64,000 nt of DNA from Lepidodermella squamata (GCA_047495785.1 JBLDXI010000019.1:3410001-3474000), one strand, 5' to 3'. Numbered from the stretch's first letter, positions 1,158 through 42,830 are shown. Program-made: numbers and translations. The notes: a model not told the origin generated them from the letters alone.

Positions 1158-4100
1158 TCAAAAAACTCGAATATCTGAGAATATAACTGCTACTTGGCCT
1201 ATTTTCTCCACGCTTATGTATCGACCCGACATTTGCGGCGTGCAGTAAAGCTCGAAATTTTGACCCGAGATCAAGTTCGGGGCTCGGTAGCCATCGTGAA
1301 TGTCACAAATCGGATTCTGAGAGAATAGATCCGAATCACCAACACGTGCAACAAGTCTGAACCCAACAGGACTCGCATAGTTTATCCAGCCATTATTCCC
1401 TGAGAGAACTAGCACGATTTTCGAGATGCTAGGCATTGTTTGACCCATATCAACTTGGAAATACGATCCTGACGTAGCGGGCTGAGGGCCTTTCGGTTCA
1501 GTAATTGAACCATCTGTTAATCCAGTGTTAACCGTTTGATTAAAATGTGACGAATTAACTGTTTTCCAAGCAGCATAGTTGGTTGAAGCATCATAGTTGA
1601 CACTGACGTAGCACAGGAGGAGGTCCACGGAGGACCCTGAAACAACGACGTATCTTCCGGATTTCTTAGACTCGGATGACTGTAAGATTCGCGATCGAAA
1701 GGGAGCAGCTTCAACATCAGGTGAAAATCTAGGCAGAGCCAATACTTCAGTTGTCGAGCCAGGCGGAGTATCAGTCACTCGAACAGATAGCCCTTTAGCA
1801 GCGAAGCCGATGTCGTCCACATAACTACAGCCTTTGAAGCTGAATCTACCAACAGGCTGTATATTGGACTCATCGGCATACAGCCGAACTGCCACTGCAA
1901 CAAGAGCTGGGTTCAAATAGCTTTCGACCGACTGGGCATCAGACCCAGTAGGGCCTTCGAATATCCTGAGGGTCGATCCGTTTCGCCAGACATAGCCAAC
2001 CCATTTGCTGGCAGAATTTGCTAATCTTGACAGCAGATGGTACTTCGTGATTGAAGCCGCACTACTCATACTCGATTGAACTGACACGGTATTAATCAGT
2101 TTCGCCTCGTTGAATTCAATCTGAAAGTAAGGTTGCTTGTCTGCTAGAAGTGGTACCCAATCAACCCCGTACAGATCGTTTCGTGCGAGATCGGCAGGAG
2201 TTGTTGCGCTAGATGCGCTTACTAAAGCATCACCGTCATAGAGCTCAACATTGCACATCAGACCTTGGCATATTTAAATTCATGGCTGTGAATACGAGAA
2301 AATGCAGGTCTTACTTGGGCATCCACGAACAAGCCATCGCAGACAAACATTATTCGACCACGTGTCGGGGTACAGTCGAAGGTACCTAGCTGTTATGTGA
2401 GGTCTTATGAAGTTCCAAATCAACGTTCCAGGATCAGTATTAGCAGTAAATGATTTCACGACGTCGGCTCCAGCTCTGTCGTTGAATTTTGTGAAATAAA
2501 CACCAATGTTGCTGTATTCGAGGTGGAAAGTTTTAACGAAGCAATTTTTCAGTTCATCGCCCTGTGTGGCAACTTGAGTGATCGTCACCACCTCTCCGAA
2601 ATCGGCCTGAATGTACTCGGTTATCAACGAGGTCAGAGGACGCCAGCAGCAAGCGACTGAATTGCCAATCCACGTTCCCATAGTGACCCTTTTGTTGTAC
2701 GGGACGTTATCAGGGCTTGGGGATGTGTAAACCGAGCTGAATGTCACATTTGCACTTGCGGTTAGATCGCTCTCGCAAACATGACCTTGAAGCATAGTTG
2801 CTGTTGGGCATTGGGACCAAAGTTCCATAGCCAAATACTGCGTGACATTGCCCTGATAGACATAGTAGCAAGCAAGTGAGCCGTTGAATCTCGCGACGCT
2901 AACTATGAGCTAAGAAAAAATTCGGAATGTAGAAAATGACGAAGCTTTTCTTCAACTCACATTAGGTAAATAAACCGTGTCTGTATCGGGCATAGTTGGC
3001 TCGAGGTAAGCCGTCGTGCCAACGATGCTACCATCGACATATGCCACCAGGCTTTTGCTAGGTATATCTACAGTCATACTGTAGTGACTCCACTTACCGG
3101 AGGCCGTCGCATTTTCGAGCGTCACTGTATAAGGGCCACTGGAGGCCGGGGTCACGGCATATTCAACGTAATTTGGAAATAAGCGAATTGCATATCGCGA
3201 AACGGTGCCGTTAATGATAGAAACGATAGGCGTGCCATTTGTATAAGGAGTCGAAGAGCTATATGCAAAAACTCCCATGGAGAACGAAGTGGAATTGATT
3301 GTCGGTAATAATGTTGATGGGCAGGAAGGTACACATTTCAGGTAATTAGAAATATTGCTTGCAAAACGAAGTGCCGAAGAACCCGATCGCCACCACGGCA
3401 GCCCAAGTGTGGATGAAACAGCAAAATTTAGCACAGCGGCGTCATAATTTGGATATAGAAATAAATTATTCGCCCACGAATAAAAGTCGAACGGGAAGCT
3501 ATTTCCTGATTTACTTTGGAAATTGATGTCTAAGGGGGCCATCGCCGTCGCTATCATTGCAGGGCTTGATGTTAGTGGGCAGCGTTTAAGTGAGTACAAC
3601 TGACGCCGATTCATGGTCACATTCGCGTATATCTGAAGGCAAGCATAGTCCCCAACAACTGAGGCCGCACCTCCGATGCGGAAAATACTTGCATTTGTCG
3701 CCAGACCATCTGGGCAAGTGAACGGAAATCGCTCAATAACCTCACCTTCATAAACTAGGCCGACGAAGGAATTGATATAATCAACGGTCACGCCGACGAA
3801 AGCCCATCTATTTGTTTTCAGTTCTACTTTCGAGGAGATGAAATCCACTGCCGATGAGCCATCCCTGCACTTGTTTCGCCAAGCAAGAGAACCATTAGTG
3901 TGGATGAAAATACCAACTTCAGGACTAGATGATGTAGCAGTGGTGACCCAGCTGAAGATATAGCCGAATCCGGCTGGTCTTACATGAATCAAGACTGTGA
4001 ATGAATACTGAAGATCCATCGCTGTTTGTAAAAGGCTGAGGTAATCATTCGCTGTGGGCAAGTTCCATGCCCTGAAAAAATTTATTCCTCGACTCATATT

Positions 4101-6878
4101 AATAGTTTGTATTCTATTGCTTACGTTTTACTGAATGTCATAATCGATGAGCAGACGGGGTTTCCACTAGATGTCAGGGCCCAACCTTTACCAGTTGTTT
4201 CCGCGAGAGTGCAAGCCAAGGAAAAGATTGCCAGAGGAGGGGGTTCTGGGATGGATATGATATGAGAACTAGCAATCAAACTGTGTATTATTTTGTTACT
4301 TTTCCAGGGACATCGGCTCGCTTGGTCGATTTCTGAGCTGTCTAGTGAGCGGTAGTACAACTGAACACACGCAAATTTGGCTCTCCATTGGCCTCGAATT
4401 TGAAAGTAGGAACTAGAAATCCTGCCAGAAGTCGCAACTTGGCAAGGAACTGGGAAAATTCCTCGCTCCACCTTGTCGATATATATTCTGGCGGTGTCGC
4501 TTTTGCAGTCAATCGATAAAGCTAGAAAAGTCCATCTGTCCATCGGAAGGATTGCGGTCGAAGGGCCGTATGTTGAGTTGATCGGATAGGATTTGATCGT
4601 GGAGGCCGTCGCGCCCATCGAGTTTTCAACAACTACGTAACCACCGAGTCCTATTTTTAGTGACATGCCGATCAGCCAGTTGCTGAAAAGATATAACACC
4701 AACACACAATTTTATCGCAATAGTCGAGAAAAAGTATTCGCCCTATTTTATACCACTCAGAAGGCCGAGAAAATGATGACAGATGATTGCAAAGTCCATA
4801 ACTATCAGGATTTTAGAAGCTTGATTTTAAGCTTCAAACTGTTATAGAGGGTTTTGAAATTAATCAGCATAGCAGGAACAATTTGGCAATAATTTTAAAT
4901 CTTAAACAACGATCCTATTTCCTAACATTACCTGTCGAAGTACGATGTCATTAGATATACGTCTGAGTAGATTGGCGATGGATAGTACAGCCAAAGAGCG
5001 TAAGTAAAGCCATTCACGCGATCTATGAACGTCTGTGACGTTGGAATTAGGACAGCTCTTGTGATATTGGCAGTCCACTGCATGGCCCCGGCCGCCCTGC
5101 CATCAACCCCAGGACAGAACGCAATAGAGTTTGAAAGAACTGCATGATTCCCGTTTCCAGATATGTCATCTGACCCGTGGATCAAATCAAACAGCCAAAG
5201 CCCGTCAGGATTCAGCGTTGCGTAAGGCGGGTAGTCAGGCATGGTGAGTTCGATCTGGTTAAATGATTGATTCGAGCCTAGATCGATAACGGCGAACGGA
5301 AAGCCAGTTGCAGAAGTAGCAGTGAATCGACTGCAGTTTTGAATGTGCTGCGATCGAATTCGCCGTCTTTGCGTGATTGTTTTCAGCGCGTTGCTATAAC
5401 CGTTGTACTCCGTTGTAACTAAGGCAGGGGTGGGTAGAACGTTCGCATCATTTGCTATATTTTGGAGGATTCGTGGGTTTCCTATTTCAGAATAAATAAA
5501 AAGGTAACACCAGCATAGTCAGCTTACTTTTGCATCCCAGAAGCTCGAGTTTGAAACATTGAGTGCCTGAAAAGGTGATTGGGGCGATTCTGAAAAATCG
5601 CCCAACAACAGGGCTCGGGAAGGCAGCAGCTGCTATTGAAGTGGCATCAACATTCCCTTCCCAAGATTCAGATCTATCAGCCTTGAGTATTTTTCGCCAG
5701 TAGTCATTTTCGCTCGACCGGCTTTGAATTTGAAAGTATTTGACCCAAGCGTTCGGCGAGCTGCAGCCTTGAATCTGAACCGCTGTGACGATTGTTTGCT
5801 TCAGAAGATCGATAATCACAAAATCGTCCAAAATTGCTGAACCTGCCAGGCCCCAATTTAGCCGAACATATCGAGAGAGCGTGTAGTTGAGCTTTGTAAG
5901 GATTTGGGAATCATCTATTTCCGAAGTCTGGATGCCTAATGGCTCGTAACACAGCGCGGGAACGCCATTCACTTGAAACTTGGCACATCTGTAGAAGGAG
6001 GAGTTGGTGATCATCGAAAACTTGAAATGTTTGGCTATCACTGGCCGGTACAGATCGAATTTTAAAGTTTCAAGGTTTAGTAGAGGCTGTAGAATTTTAA
6101 CGGGTCCACCGACAGATCTGATCGGCGTGAGCTGATTGCTGGCAAGCCCAACTTCCAACATCATGTCTTGCATGCAGACTGTTGAAACGTGGCAAAAGTA
6201 GGAGAAACGAGCTAGCCAGACAACTCGCTGCAAATCCAAAGTCACCCAAGCTCCAGCTGGTGGGACATTGCCCATATTGAAGAACCAGTTGTGCAGAGCA
6301 CTGAGCCGCCCGAAATGAGCGAATTCCGATATGACATTTGGGACGACTAAGTTATCGATGTTACTGCTTATTGCCTTATAGCCAAGATCACTCACATAGC
6401 TGTTATCGATATCCAATTCTCCATTTGTGCAATTCAACGAAGGGTCCGTCAGCGAGCAAGGTGGCGTTGAAGCAGCCTTGGAAATTGCGTCGAAAATGCC
6501 AGACTTGCCCTGTGGTGTTTTACCAATCATGCTTTCGACAGTGACCACAAACGATTTGTAGGCTTGACTCGCAAGAAATGCCACTTGGGATGAGCCATTC
6601 GGCGAAGTTGAGTACAAGCTGCAAATCCTTTGACCCAGATCCAACTCCCCCGACTGGCATGCGGGCGATAGGTTGCATTTACTCATGCATTCAACGGGTA
6701 GCCTTGTCGAAGGATAGCTTCCGACTGTCAAAGTTGACATATCTGACAAGCCGCTTTCTGGCGTAGGTTGAATTCTGAAGCCATGGAATTCGTTATAGTA
6801 ACTACCACCACCGCCTTTCGATATCTCGAAAACGTTGCTTGATATCAGCAAGCAAAAAAGCTTCGTTGGTAGAAGCAT
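1158..6878 (-). CDS. Large secreted multidomain lectin-like protein A (~1738 aa, 7 exons): signal peptide, PAN/apple, F5/8 type C (discoidin) x4, LamG/pentraxin-like x3, F-type-lectin-like folds
   Basis: Hand-spliced exons 6878-5528, 5481-4932, 4682-4300, 4245-4125, 4071-2961, 2909-2315, 2263-1158 with GT-AG introns of 46, 249, 54, 53, 51 and 51 nt. The total of 5217 nt is in frame. Motifs: CMSKCNLSPACQSG (PAN), VTAVQIQG/CFKLELLGC and VTITQVATQG/ARYLRLYPDTWSNNVCLR (F5/8), WTFLALSID and FACVQLYYRSL (LamG), MSGRYISV (FTP-like). Confidence 0.9.
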
Positions 6879-7260: not shown

Positions 7261-9225
7261 TTAGATAAATTTTGCACAGACGTCATCTGTATCGTGAGGA
7301 GATTCTACAGCAAACGGCATGAAAGGATAGTCGAAAAGTTCAACAGCAGCCATGTCGAAATGCGCATCCGTTTCGTGGTCCAATTCGCGATAGTAATGCA
7401 ACTCTTTCATCGGCATTCGACGACCCAACCAAATTCCTCTCAGAGCATAATGATGCCACTGCACGAAACGAGGATCCTCCAGACGAGCTTCGTTATAAGA
7501 TACCTTTGCCGAGGTCGAATTCAGGGTTGAACAGTTGACTAAAGCTGTAAGGGTATAGACTCCGTTATCGCCGTGGAGACCTAACTTGTACCAAGTTCCT
7601 GGGACAAAGTCGTGGAGTAACAATCGATAAGCTTCACTGAGCTTGCTCATAAGATTCTCAACAGTCAACTGAAGCTTCGAGCAGTCGTTGACCAACTCAA
7701 CTTTGATGATGATTTGAGACGGGTGTTGAAATTCAATGGCTAGGACGACTGGTTTTATATCAGGCAAGCATTTTACGCCCTCGGGTAATCTGAACCAAAA
7801 AGCTAGGGTGAAGCTCCGTATAGAAGATTCGGGCAACATTGGTAAAAATATGTGATCGCCTCGAAATGCGAAGTAGCTCGAATTCTCAGCAGCATTTCGG
7901 TCGAATAAGTCGTAGCTGTTCAACGGGCTGAGTAGACCATGCATTCTGTTACCGGATGTATCGGGTATTTTCGGTAGAATTTCCTCCGTTAGATTGCGTA
8001 ACAACCATTGGCCGATAAAACCTTTCCTGCGATCATTTCCGTTGTCCATTGTTACAAGATTGCAATCTCTCCACGAGCTCTCCGTCCAATTTTTCGCCCC
8101 TTCTTCATCCGCAACCATATATCGTATTCTGCAAAATAAACTCGTGTCTAACGACCAGATTTTGTGGGCGGTTAAATTCCGCAAATATGGCATGGTTGTA
8201 GTTTCCCATAGATGAGTTACATAATTTTTCTCGTAGTCGTAATTTCGGAAGAAGAATGTGTCCATTATGCCGCTGTGCGTCCACATAGGCCACGCTGTAG
8301 CGAATTCGTTGAGTATTGTTATGTGTTCTGGGTATTGTTTAGCGAGGATAGCCGGCATTTGGCAGCAGTGGTAGTTCCATTGCGTTGCGCCGTCGAACGT
8401 CTTGTAAGATTCAATCCATTTTTGCAAGAAGAAAGCGCCAGGCTTTCCGACAGTGAATGACATCAGCAGTGTATTTCCATCTGGAAGAAAGTCAGATAAC
8501 TTTCAATAAATATCGCGTTATATAGAAAGAAATGATTTTTCTATACAGTCATATAAGTAAAATACAATTTTGAATGCCAAGCATGAAATTCGAAAATTGA
8601 AAATTTGTTTGATTAATCTGTTAGATTTATTGGGAATTAATTCCCTACCTGCTCCTTCCTTTCCGAGTACTACGTCGTGACTAAGGAGTGGCGTTAGCGA
8701 TTTCAGCGTTATCATGTCCAAATCGATGAAAATTCCACCCTCATCCCGCAACGTCAGCAACCGGAAAACATCAGACCTATGTGCAAAATGATCCAACGGC
8801 CTGCCGTAGATTTCCTTCGTCATCTGCCGTATTTTCCGCATATCATCCACATAGTGCAACGCCTTATCAAACCATTTACCAACAGGTTTGTGATAGTAGT
8901 GCAAAATCACGTAATCAGCTCCCGATCGTAGTTTTGCTGACTTGATTGATAGGTATTGATAGAATCGAAATTCAAGCGGGCGAGTTGCGCCTTTTTCATC
9001 GAGACCAATAACGAAATGAGCGATATTTGGAGCACTAGTCGGGGTTGAGATCAAATACTGGATAGACTGGTTGATTGCATTTACCGAGGCAGTGATCGGT
9101 TTCGGGCATTCGGTTCCGCGGTAAATGAGTAGTGAGACGGAAATCGAAAGCAAAATAAGGAGGAGGATGCACGTTTGGAACGCGCTGGCGCTCCCATACA
9201 GCTTCCGCATATTATCGCATAGCAT
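7261..9225 (-). CDS. Type II membrane GT32 (DXD-motif, alpha-1,4-glycosyltransferase-like) glycosyltransferase with C-terminal LamG/ConA-like domain, 2 exons
   Basis: N-terminal TM anchor (CILLLILLSISVSLLIY), PNIAHFV, AHRSDVFRL..GGIFIDLD (DXD) and HLW motifs. Intron 8481-8648 (GTAGGG..TTCCAG, phase 1) joins ORFs 8518-9231 and 7261-8463. The C-terminal part has DTSGNRMHG and SFTLAFWFR (LamG-like). The start could also be the ATG at 9210. Confidence 0.85.
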
Positions 9226-10176
9226 TGGCAAAAGCGATGTGATCTCAGGCTGGTGTCAATAGCAGTCGGGTTGCTAAATACTTGACAACAACGTCATTTG
9301 CCACATCGAGATTTCTTGCACATTATTATTTGTTTGCCCAGAAAGCAGATGCTTTTTAGGTGACTGGTAAATGCCGCAATATCAAATGGCATATGGCATA
9401 TATACATAATATCTACACGCTGTATATCGCATAGCGGTGTGAAGGTGGGAATAAGGAATACATTGGTTGAATAGCTAATTAGATGGCAATTTCACACTGA
9501 CCGCCTTGTGAGTAATACAACAAAAATGAGCAGCGAAATCGCATGTTTAGAGGAATACTACGGATAGTAGTATTAATTAGAACATTTCTCACTGCTAACT
9601 TATTTCTTTGGTCATTCTTCATGTCAATCAATGTATTTACTGTCCGCATGTCCAGCTGCGTCCAGCTTTCGATTTTTCACCCTCAGGCAACACCTGATAA
9701 TGGATAAGCAAGGATAAATGGGTTATCAAGCAAGTTCGGAAAAATAATCCTTACTGTGCTGCACCTAACCATTTTGTTCGACTTCGGCTCTCGCTAATTA
9801 GTCGACATTAATCGACTTCGGTTCTAGTAAAAGGAAACCTGAATAGTTAGCCTGATTAGAGTGAGACATTGCTATGCTATGACCATTCCATACATTTTGA
9901 TGTTCAGTGTCTCACAGCGTAATTAGTAATTACCTACTGTTTTACCTGAGCTGTGATTTCTTATACCTTAATACCGTAATACCTATTACGAATTACTAGA
10001 CTGAGTTTTCGACTTGGTAAAATTAGATAATCCAATTGCGCAGCACATTCTTTCTCGCCTCACTAACCGCCAAATTTGCGACTATAATTCTTCCAGCTTC
10101 CAGCTTTCAACTTTAAAAGCTCAAATCAGGCCTGGCAGTACCGTGTAGTTCAAATCAGGTCTTCACAAAGATTTTT

Positions 10177-10876: not shown

Positions 10877-12493
10877 TTAGTCACAGTCGCAAGATTTCGC
10901 GTTGAATGTTGTACCGCTCGGGCAGTTTATTTTGTTGGAAGTATCCGGGCAGTTATTCTCGTCATAACGATAATACCCGGACAAATCAGATGTGCCAACG
11001 CGGTATCCCTCAGTTGCGAGGTCTCTGCATTTAGGCAGGGTGTTTTGAGGGGTTTCACATTCGTATTTACATGAATCAGAATCTGGGTTGAAATACTGCA
11101 ACGAAGGACACTTCACCGGGTCCTTCTGTACAAGACACCCTGCGTTGTCGATGATGTAATACAAAATTGAATTGCCTTGATTGTAGCTAATCCGTGTTTC
11201 GTTGTTGCCAGATCTGCAAGATGGAGCAAGGGGGTCTCTAGGTAGCTTGCAGCATCGGCATTTCTCAGCAGAGAAAAATTCACCGATTTGTATCGCGCAA
11301 AGATTGAACGTTTCCGGGCAACCATTTTTGTCCAAGTCGTAGTAACCCTTCGCTAGGGCCATCCGGTTGCGTCCTGATACAGGTTCTACGCATTTTTTCG
11401 TGGCTCCAGCTCGCTGTTCGCAAACACAGTCGCAGGTTTCAACTGCACTGTCAAAATACTGATTTTCCGGGCATTTTATCGGTTCGTTGTTGCCTAAGCA
11501 ACCGTCTGCATCGATAACGCTGTAAACACTGCTATTTGCTACGTTGCCAATTCGTTTTTGACCATTGAATTCGCACATCAAAGCGGCTGAATCAACTGGT
11601 TTCTTGCAACATTGGCAAGATTCTTCCAAGAATGGCCCACCATCAGGACATACTGTGCTTAGATCACATTTACAGCCGCAAATATCGAGTTGGAATTTCT
11701 GGTTGTTAGGGCATCTTGTCAACTTGCAAGGCCCATTCTCCGTTACTTCCTCGAACGATTGCGGGTCGTTTGATCGGGCGAATCGAAATGATGCGCCGTA
11801 GTCGCACCATGCCTTGAAGTTTGAACCATCATAAGTGCTTGAAGAGCACGAGTCGACATCGGGCCAAGTCTGTGAGATCTTCGATTTTGTTCGTGCAAAC
11901 ACATCCATTACAATCGGGCTTCAAGCTGTAGCCAATATCGCACGTTAAAAGCGGATCGCACACGCATTGACACTTGTCGAGGTCGAAAACTTGAGTAGGA
12001 CTGTTAGGGCAAGGCCGTGCCTGGCAAGGAACACAGTCACATTTTCTATTGTCAAAAATTTGGCCAGATTGACATGATTTTTTCTCGGCACAAGTGACGC
12101 ATTCGCATGCGATTCGGCCGAGGAATTCGATCAGTGTACATCCAGGCCGACAGCCAGGGCGGCAGTCACATTCGTCTCGGTTGAATATTTGGTTCGTCGG
12201 GCAAGTAACTTTCTGGCACGGCCCACTTTCGGTCGTGTCGACGTAAGATTTCGCGTCTTTTCCCAATGCGAAACGGTACGTTGAGTTGAATTCACACCAT
12301 GACTTCGGATCAATGTCGCTGAACAGGCTTGACGAACATGAGGCATGTGTTAGTGGAACTGTAGTTAGAAAGGTACATATTAGTTCGCTATTGTTGTGTA
12401 AGCCAGTTCACTATTTGCTGAAAGGTATTTGGAAATAGTTTCAAATTATTTACCTTGAATTATGACGATTAGGAGTGCGTAGTAGTGCAGCAT
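10877..12493 (-). CDS. Secreted cysteine-rich repeat protein (CXCXC / Balbiani-ring-3-like and chitin-binding-like CP..F...C motifs) with an internal 1-nt frameshift near 11860
   Basis: Exon 1 (12493-12454, MLHYYALLIVIIQ) is followed by intron 12359-12453, then ORF 11829-12266 and ORF 10877-11908 in different frames. Both frames carry the same repeat (SCSSS..K.WC....RFA....SY....E.GPC....CP.NQ.F....C.C). Confidence 0.7.
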
Positions 12494-35613: not shown

Positions 35614-38600
35614 TTAATAAACGAGAATTTCAGCGAAGGCAAGTTGCATGTCACCAGTCTTCTCAGCGGTGACATATCGACCGTTCAATGGGGGAGTGCA
35701 GTGGAAAGCGAGACCCTGGCCTGCGACTATGTTCGGCATCTGGTAACCGTTCCAGAAATCACAGACATCGTTCATCAGCAGATTCGCCCCAGCAACATTG
35801 TCACCAACTCTTATGGTGAGGCCAAAGCTGGACGATGTAGAGTAGTCAATCCAATCTGTGCCACTAGCCATGACGAGGACGACTTTCGAGACCGAAGAGC
35901 GAATGCCTAGATCCACCTGGAACCAAATAGGCCCACTGATGGCCTGAGATCCAGTTGGAGTAATAAAAGACCCATCTGTTAGCCCGGTATTGGTATCAGC
36001 TGAGAAGTTGGACGAAGTGACCGTTTGCAGCCAGGCGATGTTGGACGAGTTGTCGCTGTTGCTCACCTCAACTTTGCAAACCACCATATCGTAGCCGTTT
36101 GTTTTAGATAGCAGCGTAACATAACGACCTGACTTCGGCGGATAGCAAGGTACAGAGATCCTGGCATCGTAAGGCACGCTCTTGATATCATTTCCATCAT
36201 TGCATTTGGGTAAAGCATCAGCATCCGTTGCTCCACCGGCTGGAACTGTGTCGGACACAGCAACCTGAAGACCCTTAGTCGGGAAATCAGCCTCGTCGTA
36301 GCTGCAGCCCTTGAAACTGAACTTGCCAGCTGGTTGCGTGTTGAAATCGTCAACGTACAGCCGGACAGCACCGGCGACGAGATACGGCTTCAAATAGTTG
36401 GTGACAGGCGAGGTGTTTGGACCAGTTGAGGGTCCATCGAATATTCGAATTCGAGATCCGTTGTGGCCAAAGGTATACGCCACCCATTTGCTGGACGAGC
36501 CTCCCAATCGGCTGGTCAAGTGGTACTTGGTGATGGCAGCTGTTGTCGTTGAATGAGCCTGAACCATGACGATGTTGATGATTTTATTCTCGTTGAAATC
36601 GAGTTGAAAATATGGTTGCGAATCGCTTGGGAGTGCCATCCAGTCATTGGTGTTTCCAATATTAGCTTGTTGTAAACTGACGCTCGAGGTGTTCCAGCTC
36701 GAAGCAGAAGCAACGGCACTCCCGTCAAAGAGCTCGATGTTGCAGAATTGCTCTGCTCAAAACTAAGCTACGCATGGACATGGCAAGAGAAGAATTCTTA
36801 CGTGCGCAACCTCTGACCAGAAACTTCAAACAGATGTTGTTGCTCCATGTTTGAGGATAAATTTGCAAATATCGCGCAACAATGTAAGGCCTAAGAAAAT
36901 TCCACTGTAGACTCGTCGCATCGCTGTTTCCAGTAAATATCTGTCAAATAAGCTTCAAGTCACGTTTTATCAGGGTATAGCTTTCAGGCTTACTTTGATT
37001 ACCCCGGGTTGAGCCCGACTGGAGTAACTTCTGGAGCTGAAACCTTGAGTGCCCATTGCCAAACGGAAACTAGAAACATAACAACTCCCCACAGAGTCCC
37101 CGGCGGTAGCTATTGAATGAATGATCATCTGCTCGCCAAAGTCTAGCTGAATGTACTGAGCAGTCGACTGAGTAGAAGGAGTCCAACTGCAGGCGAGAGA
37201 GCCTCTAATATCAGTAGCATTTGGGCAGGCGGTCATGGCTGAGCTGTTTGAGCTGTATGACCACACTGCATTCGACGTCAAGTCATTCTCGCAAACGTGG
37301 CCTTCAACTGATGAATCGTAAGTAAATAATTACGAATCTCACGAAAGTTCGAAGTACTCACGAATGTTGGGTGTTGGAATAGACGTTGATAGCTCCATTG
37401 CAAGGTATTGATCGATAACTGCCCTGTACACAAAAAACCAAGCCATCGGGCCTTCAAAACGCATGCCATGGAATGGGTCCTGTCGAGAATAAATCAAATC
37501 TCCAGCATTTCACCCTTGGAATCTCTTGTATCCTTACCACTCCGAGGTACATTGAATCCGTGGCATCAGGAATGCAGTCTGGCATACTGCTTACAGCGTT
37601 TCGGGTCCCGTCACGATACGTCGTCAGTTTGCTGTTTCCTGCCGTGAAATCAGCGGCCATCAAAAAGTGCTCCCATACATTGTATTTCAGGCCCATCTGA
37701 TACATAATGTTCCATCCAGAACAAGCTAGCGAGTACTCAGTTTGGTTGCTGGACGGCAACAAACGAATAGTGTGTTTGGGCTGGCTGGATGTTTAGGCGC
37801 ACCTTTGTTCCGAAGGAACGAAAGTTCCCACCCAATTGCCATTTTCCGCGCCCTTTCCCCTTTTGAACGTGATTTAAATGGCGACCCCCCCAAATCTCAG
37901 AAGGGCAAGGATATAGATCGCACAACCTTGCAAGTTATATCAATCGATAGCCCTTGACGAGGAGAGCTTAACAAAACTATTCCAGCCATTTTCGCCGGAC
38001 CATCTCGAAGAAATCGTTAAAAAACTGAATTTGACCTACTTTTTCTGGGGGTATGCCCAATTTAAACTAGGTCAATTTGGTGCTATTTTTAGCTGCGCAA
38101 TCACTAATATAGGGCCAGTACTGCGCACGTCACTAATAATAGAAATATACTGATCGCGATTTGGCCTTATGGCCAGTGTTACTCGAGCTTTCATACAATT
38201 TAGCCTCCCTCCTCGGGGAGGGAGGCTTTCAACAGTTCATTGCTGACTATCATTTTATTGAAGATGTATCCTCGTGAAGAAATGGCTTATTTTAGGTCAT
38301 GTGACTGGGGCAAAATGCAAAGCTAATTGAAAATCACACGATAGATTAATTGATAATTTGACATCGGGCATGGATTATTCGTCATTCGATCGGCATAATT
38401 GCTACTAAGATTACAGTTTTTCGCTCTATTCAAGTCATAGAGGCAGCTTATTTCCTCCACTGTATTCGAGAACGCGATTGATCGCGTTGATTGATAGCTA
38501 CCAAAGGCTTGCCCAGAGCATTGTCGAAAGCTATTAGCTCTGCGGTTATACATTGAACATTTCAATTGCTCTGTTAGGTGGACACGAGATGGCAGTTGCT

Positions 38601-41600
38601 CTTCAGTGAAAAATGGCAACTGAGCACCATATTCTTATCTCATTTAAATTTACGGCGTTCGCTTCTGCAGGAATCGATGTGTACTAATAAAGTAAAATGG
38701 CATACAAGAAGGTTTGGGTTTAATCGGAAGGTGTTAAATCGTATTGCAAAAGCAAGGTAAACGACGAGTCAAGCCAGCGAAAGTATACAAGATTAGGCGG
38801 TGCGCATGAAACCATTGTCTCGTTATACAAAAGCATAGGAAATTTTTAACAAGCTTCGAAGGCTCGCACCAGCTGATTATTGCACTCGCACATTGAACCA
38901 TGCAAAGGTGTCGTTTTCTGCTTGTACACTGGCCGGGAGGCTTACTGTAGGTCTCATGACACTGGCATAAAATGAACACCCTTGCGTAACTTCACTTTTT
39001 AAGAGGTACCCTGCATAATTGAAGCCCAGGGATCGAAGAAAGACGACATATTGAGTATCGCTTTAGTCCGACTGGGTTAATTAAACCCCTGTATAAAGTC
39101 TAAGAAACCAGAGAAGTTCTATGGGCCCCTTCAACAGACATCGAAATCAATCGACATTCAATTAAACGACTCCTGTCTACACAATTTTCACGGTAAGGTA
39201 TCGCAAGATTTACAATACTTAGGTATTGCTACCGATGTATACTAATTCAGACTGAATTCAGGACATACAACAAGAATTACAACATACAACTATCAAATCA
39301 CAGAAGCGTCTCCTGTCTCCTCGACGTACTACGCCCGTGGTTGAACCAGCGGTGAGCCGGCGTTGGTCGGCCGTTTTATGGAGGGTGGGGCTCAGGCCCT
39401 TCCTTATAAAGGGAGGGCGTTTTGGGAGAGTTGGTTAGCCCATAAAATCCCATTATCTCCTACAATCCACTTTTTTTAATTTGAGCTAGCATTTCACTAG
39501 CACAAACAGCTGGATCCGTACATGGTAACAAGAGCACTTCCAGTACTTGTTGATATATTCGGGAAGGTAAGAGCAAATATACCGACGGCGTAAGGTGGAA
39601 TAGGAGCCGTAGTGCGGTTTGCTGAAGGGTTGACCGATGATGTGTAATTGATCGCCTGGAGATTTGACGAGGTACCAGTGTAGGAAAAGCGATAGTTATT
39701 GGTCTCGCCCGATGCCCAAAAGAAGGTTGCACCAGCGGTTGAGGGACCGTTTAATGAGAACCACGGTGTCATATCGTCGACTGAGCCGAGACCAAAGTTG
39801 AAATCGAGCGGAGCAACCACTGAGGCTTTCATGTCGCTGGCCGATGTTAGAGGACATCTCCCGACTGAATGAAGCTGCCTCCTGGTCAAAGCGGTTTGGT
39901 AAAACTGCAAACAAGCATAAGATGCTCCGGCGCTTCCTGGACCTCCAACTCTAAAATAGTTTTGAACAGTGTCCAAACCAACATCTGGACAGCTCACAGT
40001 GAAGGTATCGATTTTCTCTCCTTCTTGGACCAACGAAATTGTCGAGCTTGGGTAATCGTAGACAAAGCCAATGTAGCTCCAACGGTTCAGCGGGAATCTT
40101 CGCGTTGATGTGTAAGTTCTTGACGTAGAGTTGCCACGGCAAGCAAAGTATAGGACCAAAGTTTGCTGTGGAGCGATTCCCAAGGCGACTTTCGGGCTAC
40201 CCGATGATGAATCATCATACCAACCAAGCAGCCACTGACCGAGCCCAGTTGGTTTTATATGAACCAACATGGTCATTGACCAGGGATACGCAAAGCCAGC
40301 TGCTGAAGCGTTCATGTACAAGTAGTCTGATTGCGTCGACATGCGCCACGCCCTTGAAAAGATAAGCGGGTGCTTAAATGCAAAATATTGAACGTACAAG
40401 ACTCACGAGCTAGAATAGCTTAAGATTTTGTCACAAACAGGTGAACCAGCTGAGACTAGGCTCGTGGATGAGATTAGTCCTCCCAGCTTGCAATCGAGAG
40501 GATACAAGCCAGTTGGTGTCGGAGCTAAAAAATAGGAGAAAATTTCGATTAAGAGCGATGCTTTTCTGTCGGTAATTTTACTTCTCCATGGGCATAAACT
40601 CGCTTGTTCCGCCTCCGCACTGTCAAGTACTCTTCGGTAAATTTGCATGCACGAAAGCTTACCAGTCCAAGGGCCTCGAACAGTAATGTATGAGTTTACT
40701 TTTATCGCCGTTGGTGCGTTTATTTGGCAGTCGAGGCGACCAATGTAGCGCTCAACTCGATCGATGTAGACCCTAGCTGTAGTAGAGCGGCAGTCCAACG
40801 TGACCACCATGAAGAACCACTTGTTGACCGGAACGTTATAACTTGACGATAATGCAGCTAAGGTGGCATGGGGAAAACCATACGAATCCGTGTCATCCGA
40901 TAAGCTACCAACTCTCAACTGCGAGTTGCTCTGAATCCTGATATTGAAACCTCTTTTTGGGCTATAAGGTGTGGATTGCATCTAAAAATGATCATCTTCC
41001 GATAGAGACTCACCTCCCCAGTGAATATGAAACGAATAGGAAGAAATCCCCAGTAGCTTGAGTGTGATATATCCAAGCTGCATACGTATAGCCGTAGCTC
41101 AAATCCGAGCCTAGATTGTCCATTGGAATGAATAGCCCATTGTCAGCCCCAGTCCACTGAAGAGCTGAGAGTGGCTCATTATTAGGTCCAGTGCCATACG
41201 AAAGGCCGTTGGAGAAAATTCCATTATTACCATTTCCGCTCAGATCATCAGCTCGGTGGAGTATATCGAGCAGCCAGAGGCCATTGGGAACTAGAGTGAC
41301 CGAAGGCGGCAGCTGCGGCGTTACTACCTCGACCGAAGTTATAGTTTGTTTTGAGCCGAGGTCGATCGTCACATATGGCCTGTCCAAGTAGTTCAAAGTT
41401 CCAGTTTTCAGTCTTGTACAATTGAAATAACTCTTCTGCCGTATTACTCGGCCTTGAGTCAGTGCTGTAGCTGCTGCTGTTTTGTAGCTACTCGTTTCAG
41501 CAGTGTAGGCCTTGGCTATGGAAGCCTTGTTCGCGAGATTCGGGGAATATCTTGGGGTAGTTTTGCATCCCAGAAGCTCCAGTTTGAAGCAGATCGAACC

Positions 41601-42830
41601 AGAAAAGGTGACTGGCTCAATCTTGAAAAATCGGCCTACTATCGGCTTTGGGAAAACAAACATCGCAAGTCTAGTTGCATCTACGTTCCCGTTTATCAAG
41701 GATAAACCATTATTGTCATTAACAGCCGACCAATCGCTGCTACCCTTGGCTTTTGACGACAATCGGAACATTGTAACCCAAGAGCTGAGTCGACTGCAAC
41801 CTTGGAATTGAACTGCTGTAACGATTGAAGCTTTTCGTAGGTCGATTATGAGAGGGGATTGAGATTGTGCGCCTGTCATTGCCCAATTGAGACGAGCGGT
41901 CTGATTTGCAGAAAGCTGCCAATCTTCGATTTCTCCATTTTCCAGACCAAGTGGCTCCATGCAGTACGCTGGGCATCCTCGGAAACCAAATCGGCCCTGT
42001 CGGCTGCTAGTATCCAGGGCACTAGGCGATGCTGTTATAATTTTGATGTACTGCAAAAGAATAGGTCGAAATAATTCATAGACGATTGGCTGATCAACGC
42101 CCCCAGCAACTGGAATAATAACTGTTCCACCGCGACCTTTTTCTACCGGGTAAAAAGAAACCCCATCAAAACTATATTCGAGACGAACTCCAGCTTGATA
42201 TGATAGCCAAAAGAAATGGAAATGAGTCAACCAAACAAAGCGCTGCAGGTCAGTTCTAATCCACCCGCCGAGTGCAGTGTTCGAACCCAAGCCAAAATAC
42301 CAGTTCGAGGTCGCAAAAAATCTGCCCCAATTCGGCTTTTCGCCATTTGATGACGATGTCGAAAACGCTGAATCGCTGACGTAGGAAGTGTCGAGATCAA
42401 GCACCTCAATGTCGCAATGGTTCCGCTTGGTGCAAGGTAATGACCTTGCAGCTTTGAGAATCGCTTGGAAATACGCAGTCCTAACGCCAGTTTTGTTGTT
42501 AACGCTATTCGGAGTAGCGCTGAATGAAACTGCGTCCGTATTCGCAGCCAATTTGACTATTTGTGACCCGGCAATTGAGAATTCCCAGAGCAAACATGTT
42601 TTAGTCGATTTTGTGTATTGTCCAGATTCGCAATTGATCATGGTGTTGCAGGCTGCCATGCATGCGGCCTGAGAGCTAACGGATGTGAGTGTCGCTAGCA
42701 AATGAGGGCTCAAATCCATGCTTGAAACCACAGAATCGATGGAGCTATCCTTGTACATTTGGTAATGAACTCCGCTGAATGAAACGGAGTTCATCGAATA
42801 AAGGATCATGAGAGCAAACACAGCTCTCAT
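35614..42830 (-). CDS. Paralog B of the secreted PAN/F5-8/LamG/F-type-lectin-like protein; exon 4 interrupted by a 1.7 kb insertion (possibly a disrupted allele or pseudogene)
   Basis: Exons 42830-41014, 40961-40582, 40524-40407, 40352-(insertion 37790-39508)-37538, 37479-37362, 37307-36994, 36940-36802 and 36752-35614, with introns of 49-58 nt. It is colinear with protein A throughout. Removing the insertion plus one TSD restores ...TMYGSSQPKHTIRLLP... Confidence 0.85.
37790..39508. mobile_element. 1719-bp TG...CA element (solo-LTR-like) with 6-bp TSD GCTGGA inserted in a coding exon
   Basis: Ends are TGTTT...AAACA, with a perfect TSD at 37784-37789 and 39509-39514. There is no long ORF. 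TATAAA occurs near 39405 and a GC hairpin at 38202-38227. Confidence 0.85.

Follow-up and report, generated by a model that had tools for sequence, protein, structure and literature searches.

The closest described counterparts of the proteins reported here are the tandem F-type lectins (MsaFBP32, PDB 3cqo; eel agglutinin AAA, PDB 1k12). In eel agglutinin, the F-type lectin domain (FTLD; Pfam PF22633, SMART FTP) is built from two sheets, β5-8-11 and β2-3-10-6-7, and the fold is clamped by Cys50-Cys146, Cys108-Cys124, Arg41-Glu149 and Asp64-Arg131 (PMC5712786). Fucose is bound through the motif HX24RXDX4(R/K), and the segment NRGDCCGER, with Arg79, Asp81 and Arg86 of eel agglutinin, forms the CDR4 loop (PMC5712786). 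Reviews of FTLDs mention only small indels in the CDR loops (PMC5712786), and in the literature searched we came across no F-type lectin domain described as interrupted. Here we describe two paralogous genes, A and B, in a 64,000-nucleotide (nt) stretch of Lepidodermella squamata DNA (GCA_047495785.1, JBLDXI010000019.1:3410001-3474000), which as a whole we call the window. By sequence comparison, each encodes an FTLD-like host domain that is interrupted by complete foreign domains, an A1-B-A2 arrangement.

Small β-sandwiches that are split by a larger insert and still fold are familiar from complement C3 and α2-macroglobulin, where a CUB domain holds the thioester domain, and from the PSI, hybrid and β-I domains of integrin β. 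Those proteins hold only one inserted domain, or one pair nested together, measuring about 240-300 residues, and they are unrelated to lectin folds.

About 20% of multidomain proteins contain a domain insertion, and the insert is smaller than the domain hosting it in 77% of the events, the medians being 115 versus 199 residues (PMC13114784, an ECOD survey). Compared with those cases, the host here is a 150-residue β-sandwich lectin-like domain, and what it holds is about 6.5 times as large as itself, in contrast to a typical insert, which is the smaller partner (PMC13114784). The SI3 region of cyanobacterial RpoC2 likewise has the A1-B-A2 layout, in which a loop of the host holds a large module of 8-10 domains and 630+ residues (PMC13114784); the insert in A and B differs in being a linear string of five unrelated extracellular domains and not recursive copies of one motif. 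Bacteroidetes GH10 xylanases, in which tandem CBM4 modules lie inside the catalytic domain, are similar in that more than one complete carbohydrate-binding-type module has been inserted (PMC7848910). They differ in being bacterial, in having a TIM-barrel enzyme as a still active host and in carrying two modules, not five (PMC7848910).

Genes A and B resemble tandem F-type lectins in carrying two FTLD-like units in tandem at the C terminus; by profile, the terminal domain and each half of the interrupted one are homologous to them. Equivalents of Cys108-Cys124 are present in most copies, and equivalents of Cys50-Cys146 in the split domains of A and B. Unlike in the described lectins, about 1000 residues split the first unit at CDR4, both units lack HX24RXDX4(R/K), the cation motif is kept in the terminal unit only, and the fold is a predicted one.

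The two pieces and the sequence between them

Both genes encode, in order, a PAN domain, two F5/8 type C (F5/8C, discoidin) domains, a piece of 80 amino acids (aa), three LamG domains, two further F5/8C domains, a second piece of about 80 aa and a terminal F-type-lectin-like domain. The features are listed below in window coordinates; the limits of the single cassette domains are approximate and include introns.

Gene A
1158-6878, minus strand: whole coding sequence (CDS), 1756 aa plus stop, an intact multi-exon open reading frame (ORF)
6878-5528, 5481-4932, 4682-4125, 4071-2961, 2909-2315 and 2263-1158, minus strand: exons
5529-6878, minus strand: N-terminal part, with a signal-peptide-like start, a PAN/apple-like region, F5/8C-1 and F5/8C-2 (Pfam)
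5243-5528, minus strand: first half of the split FTLD-like domain, aa 451-530, spanning the 46-nt intron 5482-5527; one Cys, aa 500
1827-5242, minus strand: inserted cassette, aa 531-1534, 1004 aa
5242-4259, minus strand: LamG1
4258-3561, minus strand: LamG2
3560-2805, minus strand: LamG3
2804-2235, minus strand: F5/8C-3
2234-1827, minus strand: F5/8C-4
1599-1826, minus strand: second half of the split FTLD-like domain, aa 1535-1610, 76 residues; one Cys, aa 1606
1161-1598, minus strand: terminal uninterrupted FTLD-like domain, aa 1611-1756, 146 residues
5444-5461, 5324-5338 and 5267-5290, minus strand: motif sites in the first half
1770-1796, 1641-1664 and 1599-1622, minus strand: motif sites in the second half

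Gene B
35614-42830, minus strand: whole CDS, 1725 aa plus stop, an intact ORF in eight exons
42830-41014, 40961-40407, 40352-39504, 37784-37538, 37479-37362, 37307-36994, 36940-36802 and 36752-35614, minus strand: exons
41322-41561, minus strand: first half of the split FTLD-like domain, aa 424-503; one Cys, aa 471
36304-41321, minus strand: inserted cassette, aa 504-1496, 993 aa, with the domain order of A
36064-36303, minus strand: second half of the split FTLD-like domain, aa 1497-1576; three Cys
35617-36063, minus strand: terminal FTLD-like domain, aa 1577-1725
41523-41540, 41409-41423 and 41346-41369, minus strand: motif sites in the first half
36250-36276, 36112-36135 and 36064-36087, minus strand: motif sites in the second half

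The short motifs quoted for the two halves in an earlier, sequence-only reading of this DNA were all found on the minus strand where that reading had placed them (the motif sites above). It had put about 980 aa, with three LamG and two F5/8 domains, between the halves of both paralogs, and the distance proved to be 1004 aa in A and 993 aa in B. Pfam, applied to the exon pieces of gene A, places three Laminin_G_3 and two F5_F8_type_C matches between the halves, and the cassette of B is collinear with that of A (tblastn and gene model). In the N-terminal part of A, the F5_F8_type_C match is strong (E 1.5e-12) and the PAN_1 match weak (E 0.0085).

At the level of sequence profiles, the later piece clearly corresponds to an F-type lectin domain's second half. 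The profile of the three-sequence family (A, B and a homologue on a metagenome contig, L001) aligned to the FTLD alignment with an hhalign probability of 96.7% (E 3.9e-10) over template columns 84-150 of 154. In a profile search of the whole PDB, the sole significant match of the second half was FBP32 (3cqo; E 3.4e-4), which aligned in the second halves of both its FTLDs. On a custom hidden Markov model (HMM) of length 143, built from seven genuine FTLDs, the second halves cover positions 81-142; that of gene B covers positions 90-142 with 21.4 bits, a score reached by none of 2000 shuffles.

The first halves match the complementary part of the same HMM (positions 20-68; 22-65 in gene A), with weaker scores. 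As single comparisons, the E values were 2e-4 for B, 4e-3 for A and 0.03 for L001, and the empirical P values from 2000 shuffles were 0.001, 0.011 and 0.048, respectively. With hhalign, the first half aligned over 23 columns (P = 0.0027), on the strand pair that carries PWW-VDLG. In a language-model feature search, all three first pieces lay nearest to clusters of short PF22633/PF00754 proteins (scores 0.92-0.94, the ten best in one clan); neighbour scores of this size also arise by chance in some cases, so that this line is independent but soft.

Support for the two pieces as homologues of complementary parts of one FTLD-like jelly roll, its first and its second half, comes from the joined halves, which give one collinear FTLD match across the junction. 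Concatenation had been suggested as a check in the sequence-only reading, and the joined sequences did find the FTLD: HMMER returned a single domain match of 31.4 bits for B (HMM positions 21-142), 29.7 for L001 and 8.4 for A, and hhalign on the family profile in the natural order gave 96.3% (E 1.6e-9) over 103 columns. In the reversed order, only the second half aligned, over 63 columns (hhalign). When a shuffled first half was placed ahead of the second half, it beat the true one in just 1, 1 and 0 of 2000 trials for A, B and L001. The break points are complementary, at HMM positions of about 68 and 81-90, and the junction aligns to the NRGDCCGER segment. As proposed earlier, then, the break is supported as falling on the loop that bears the RxDxxxxR part of the fucose motif.

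The sequence is continuous across both junctions. The first half runs into LamG1, and the last F5/8C domain into the second half, unbroken within one exon in A, B and L001, and no start or stop codon lies near either junction. LamG1 begins about 12 residues past the first piece, and the second piece about 10 residues past the closing Cys of F5/8C-4; with linkers this short, there is no space for a hidden missing half at either place. In a single ORF model, HMM positions 20-68 come before, and positions 81-142 after, the Pfam matches to three LamG and two F5/8C domains; the host domain sequence of A and B is thus, at this level, of the A1-B-A2 type.

The sequence-only reading expected domain scanners to miss the split architecture, and Pfam, run on the exon pieces, indeed detects neither half. 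Nor do the halves match as discoidin domains. PF00754 (discoidin / F5/8 type C) had no match to either half at E up to 1, and the second-half profile finds only FTLD in the PDB; the hint of the discoidin clan comes from the language-model neighbours only. We also asked whether an F5/8C-F5/8C-FTLD block had been duplicated. In A, the four F5/8C domains share at most 28% identity and show no pairwise pattern, which gives no support either way.

Binding motifs, fold-clamping residues and the terminal domain

The terminal domain is F-type-lectin-like at the profile level. An exhaustive phmmer search of 1.84 billion proteins with the last exon of A found genuine FTLD proteins (P0015, P0016 and P0021; E 3e-5 to 6e-4) that carry the NRGDCCGERL motif and PF22633 matches and align to the second half of the terminal domain. 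The terminal domain of B matches PF22633 at positions 3-89 of 91 with E 4.6e-4, below the Pfam curated cutoff, and Pfam returned nothing for the terminal 146 residues of A. On the custom FTLD HMM, the terminal domains score 33.6 bits (A; E 1.3e-12 at Z=1) and 35.8 bits (B), and the terminal-domain family aligns to the FTLD alignment with an hhalign probability of 98.4%.

By motif, the proteins are not fucolectins, and by homology they are FTLD-like. The first statement is made because the fucose motif was looked for and neither the split nor the terminal domain has it, in agreement with the earlier remark that both lack RxDxxxxR. At the split domain's His52 position, A, B and L001 all have Arg, and the insert with its linkers takes the place of the RxDxxxxR segment; the terminal domain has neither the His nor the Arg-x-Asp at the aligned columns. 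Of the cation motif h2DGx, the terminal domains keep the invariant D34 and G35, and the split domain lacks it at the aligned place.

Residues that clamp the eel agglutinin fold have equivalents here. The equivalents of Asp64 (in VDLG) and Arg131 (in GRY) are present in all three genes. Cysteines number 1+1 in the first and second halves of A, 1+3 in B and 0+2 in L001, so that a half has an odd number only when its partner does too. The position of Cys50 falls in the first half and that of Cys146 in the second; A and B have both cysteines, and L001 has neither. By alignment, the split domain of B has all four of Cys50, Cys146, Cys108 and Cys124, that of A has only the Cys50-Cys146 pair, and just the Cys108-Cys124 pair is seen in the split domain of L001 and in every terminal domain. 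This co-occurrence fits a predicted disulfide across the halves.

The halves are also as conserved between the paralogs as the neighbouring domains are. The first halves of A and B are 39% identical and the second halves 40%, against 29-66% for the other domains, in local alignments some of which are partial.

Gene models, the metagenome homologue and neighbouring genes

The gene models are based on the continuity of the ORFs, on the splice consensus and on comparison of the paralogs, in a window that is eukaryotic with short GT..AG introns. In gene A, open segments from 6881 down to 1161 are joined by five GT..AG introns of 46-249 nt, and the spliced translation has no internal stop (ORF segments and junction sequences inspected). 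The introns of gene B measure 49-58 nt, apart from one of 1719 nt with the weak donor GTGCTA, which is the least certain junction; the spliced translation is stop-free with the junctions inspected, and the reading frame around 37400-37500 was fixed by comparison with gene A. The two proteins are 39.4% identical overall, the genes sit 35 kb apart, and tblastn found no further copies in the 64-kb window. Both proteins are probably secreted, because neither has a transmembrane-like hydrophobic window (Kyte-Doolittle) and each begins with a short hydrophobic leader.

Two introns deserve mention. The 46-nt intron of gene A (5482-5527, minus strand) is of phase 1 and falls exactly at the boundary between F5/8C-2 and the first half, where B and L001 are continuous; the difference therefore points to intron gain or loss between the paralogs. 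The 1719-nt intron of gene B (37785-39503, minus strand) falls inside LamG3, the least conserved domain between A and B, and may contain an inserted element or a missed small exon.

An exhaustive HMMER search of 1.84 billion representatives from public protein libraries returned a single family member, P0001 (35% identity). A JGI metagenome scan for family members found none. A word-indexed search with the first-half region returned only L001's own product. The window proteins had no self match in the HMMER search, and the genome's own proteins are likewise absent from protein libraries of 15 billion sequences, so that the organism has little coverage in public data. We describe A and B as members of what appears to be a small, lineage-restricted family of secreted mosaic proteins.

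P0001 is encoded on L001, a 30-kb eukaryotic metagenome contig, by a gene with the same domain order and the same split; the first half and LamG1 again share one ORF. In this gene the terminal FTLD-like domain, uninterrupted in A and B, is split as well (L001:5765-6588, plus strand). Residues 206-249 of P0001 match PF22633 positions 2-45 of 91, followed by a complete SUEL / rhamnose-binding lectin domain (1-80 of 80, 8 Cys), a 59-nt intron (6291-6349) and a second half that matches FTLD HMM positions 105-133. The SUEL domain would be a second, independent insertion at the same loop, and since the terminal domain of A and B is uninterrupted, the loop would have taken whole domains at least twice. 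This independent case makes it plausible that the cassette of A and B was also inserted, as an event.

Next to gene A, on its upstream side, a gene at 7261-9231 (minus strand) encodes a DXD glycosyltransferase region (Gly_transf_sug, E 8e-10) followed by a 400-aa part that has no Pfam match and looks LamG/pentraxin-like by eye. Cysteine-rich repeat ORFs lie at 10877-12266 (minus strand), with a weak CXCXC repeat match and repeated C-x-C-x-C and 'CPxxQxF' style units. An Rfam scan of the 64-kb window found no family that reaches threshold.

A possible clasp and its alternatives

In the F-type lectin fold, early and late strands are interleaved in the sheets, and we infer that half a domain therefore cannot close a sandwich. 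We consider it probable, and the most likely mechanism, that the split domain acts as a single-fold 'clasp' within one chain. In this model, the cassette, whose three LamG and two F5/8C domains make up about 1000 residues, interrupts an FTLD-like jelly roll at its CDR4-equivalent loop, and after translation the halves would pack into one β-sandwich within the same chain. The sandwich would be pinned by the Cys50-Cys146 equivalents where these are present and, in each of the three genes, by the Asp64-Arg131 salt bridge. This would tie the beginning of LamG1 to the end of F5/8C-4, and the cassette would project as a closed loop from the would-be ligand face. The split domain would then serve as a structural hub and not as a fucose binder, and the LamG, discoidin, PAN and terminal domains would account for any binding to glycans or matrix. 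The ring-closing clasp follows from topology only if the halves co-fold.

Several observations weigh against this model. The first half is weakly significant on its own, with hhalign probabilities of 2-11%, and its profile found no meaningful match in the PDB. The covariation of the cysteines amounts to one joint change among three sequences, and the family, with the window genome and one metagenome contig, is too small for co-evolution statistics. AlphaFold models from three-sequence alignments are of low confidence and uninformative, with a mean pLDDT of 41.8 for the last exon of B (F5/8C-4, second half and terminal domain) and 32.3 for the L001 ORF (F5/8C-2, first half and LamG1); both are single-exon pieces, and neither contains both halves. 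A 150-residue host with a 1000-residue insert runs counter to the usual size relation. Finally, none of the RNA runs searched for the locus holds it.

A different reading of the same sequence homology is that the halves are relics, derived from an FTLD and no longer folding together, that persist as linkers or small independent sheets. It draws on the barely detectable first half, the loss of both cation and fucose motifs from the split domain, the lack of a confident AlphaFold fold for either piece and the mere 8.4 bits of the joined halves of A. We nevertheless regard it as unlikely. Conservation of the halves between A and B equals that of the flanking domains, the split is kept in a second species, and the break points are exactly complementary, at HMM positions of about 68 and 81-90. 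Fold-clamping residues are retained, with cysteine counts that are odd in both halves or even in both. Moreover, half a jelly roll would expose core strands and would not be expected to last as a linker.

It is also conceivable, with a still smaller probability, that the fold is completed between chains, the first half of one molecule pairing with the second half of another to give domain-swapped dimers, rings or head-to-tail polymers. Our data do not distinguish within-chain from between-chain pairing. The first half would be exposed for some 1000 residues of translation before its partner is made, and secreted discoidin, LamG and PAN proteins often build matrices. However, effective concentration would favour the partner in the same chain, both linkers are short (about 10-12 residues), as expected of a compact insertion, and no oligomerisation motif was seen. 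In its broadest form, to which we give the same low weight, this idea would have fold completion from molecule to molecule build secreted rings or polymers, with the CDR4 loop, given its two independent insertions, as a recurrent docking site for whole domains. If true, between-chain completion would be a way of assembling a matrix that has not been described for jelly rolls of the lectin type.

That the arrangement is an artefact (mis-assembly, a pseudogene, or two genes or alternative transcripts read as one protein) is highly improbable: there is no RNA run for the organism and one B intron is 1719 nt long with a weak donor, yet the two paralogs, which lie 35 kb apart, share the order and the in-exon junctions with each other and with an independent metagenome contig, each ORF stays intact through more than 5 kb of coding sequence, and neither start nor stop lies near either junction.

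To return to the clasp within one chain, its interest lies in a split and a five-domain insert at the ligand loop that have been kept in two paralogs and a second species, next to an uninterrupted terminal domain that allows comparison. If the halves co-fold, these proteins would be a test case for the sequence separation that a jelly roll tolerates in the secretory pathway, for loop permissiveness in protein engineering, and for annotation pipelines, which miss such split domains entirely.

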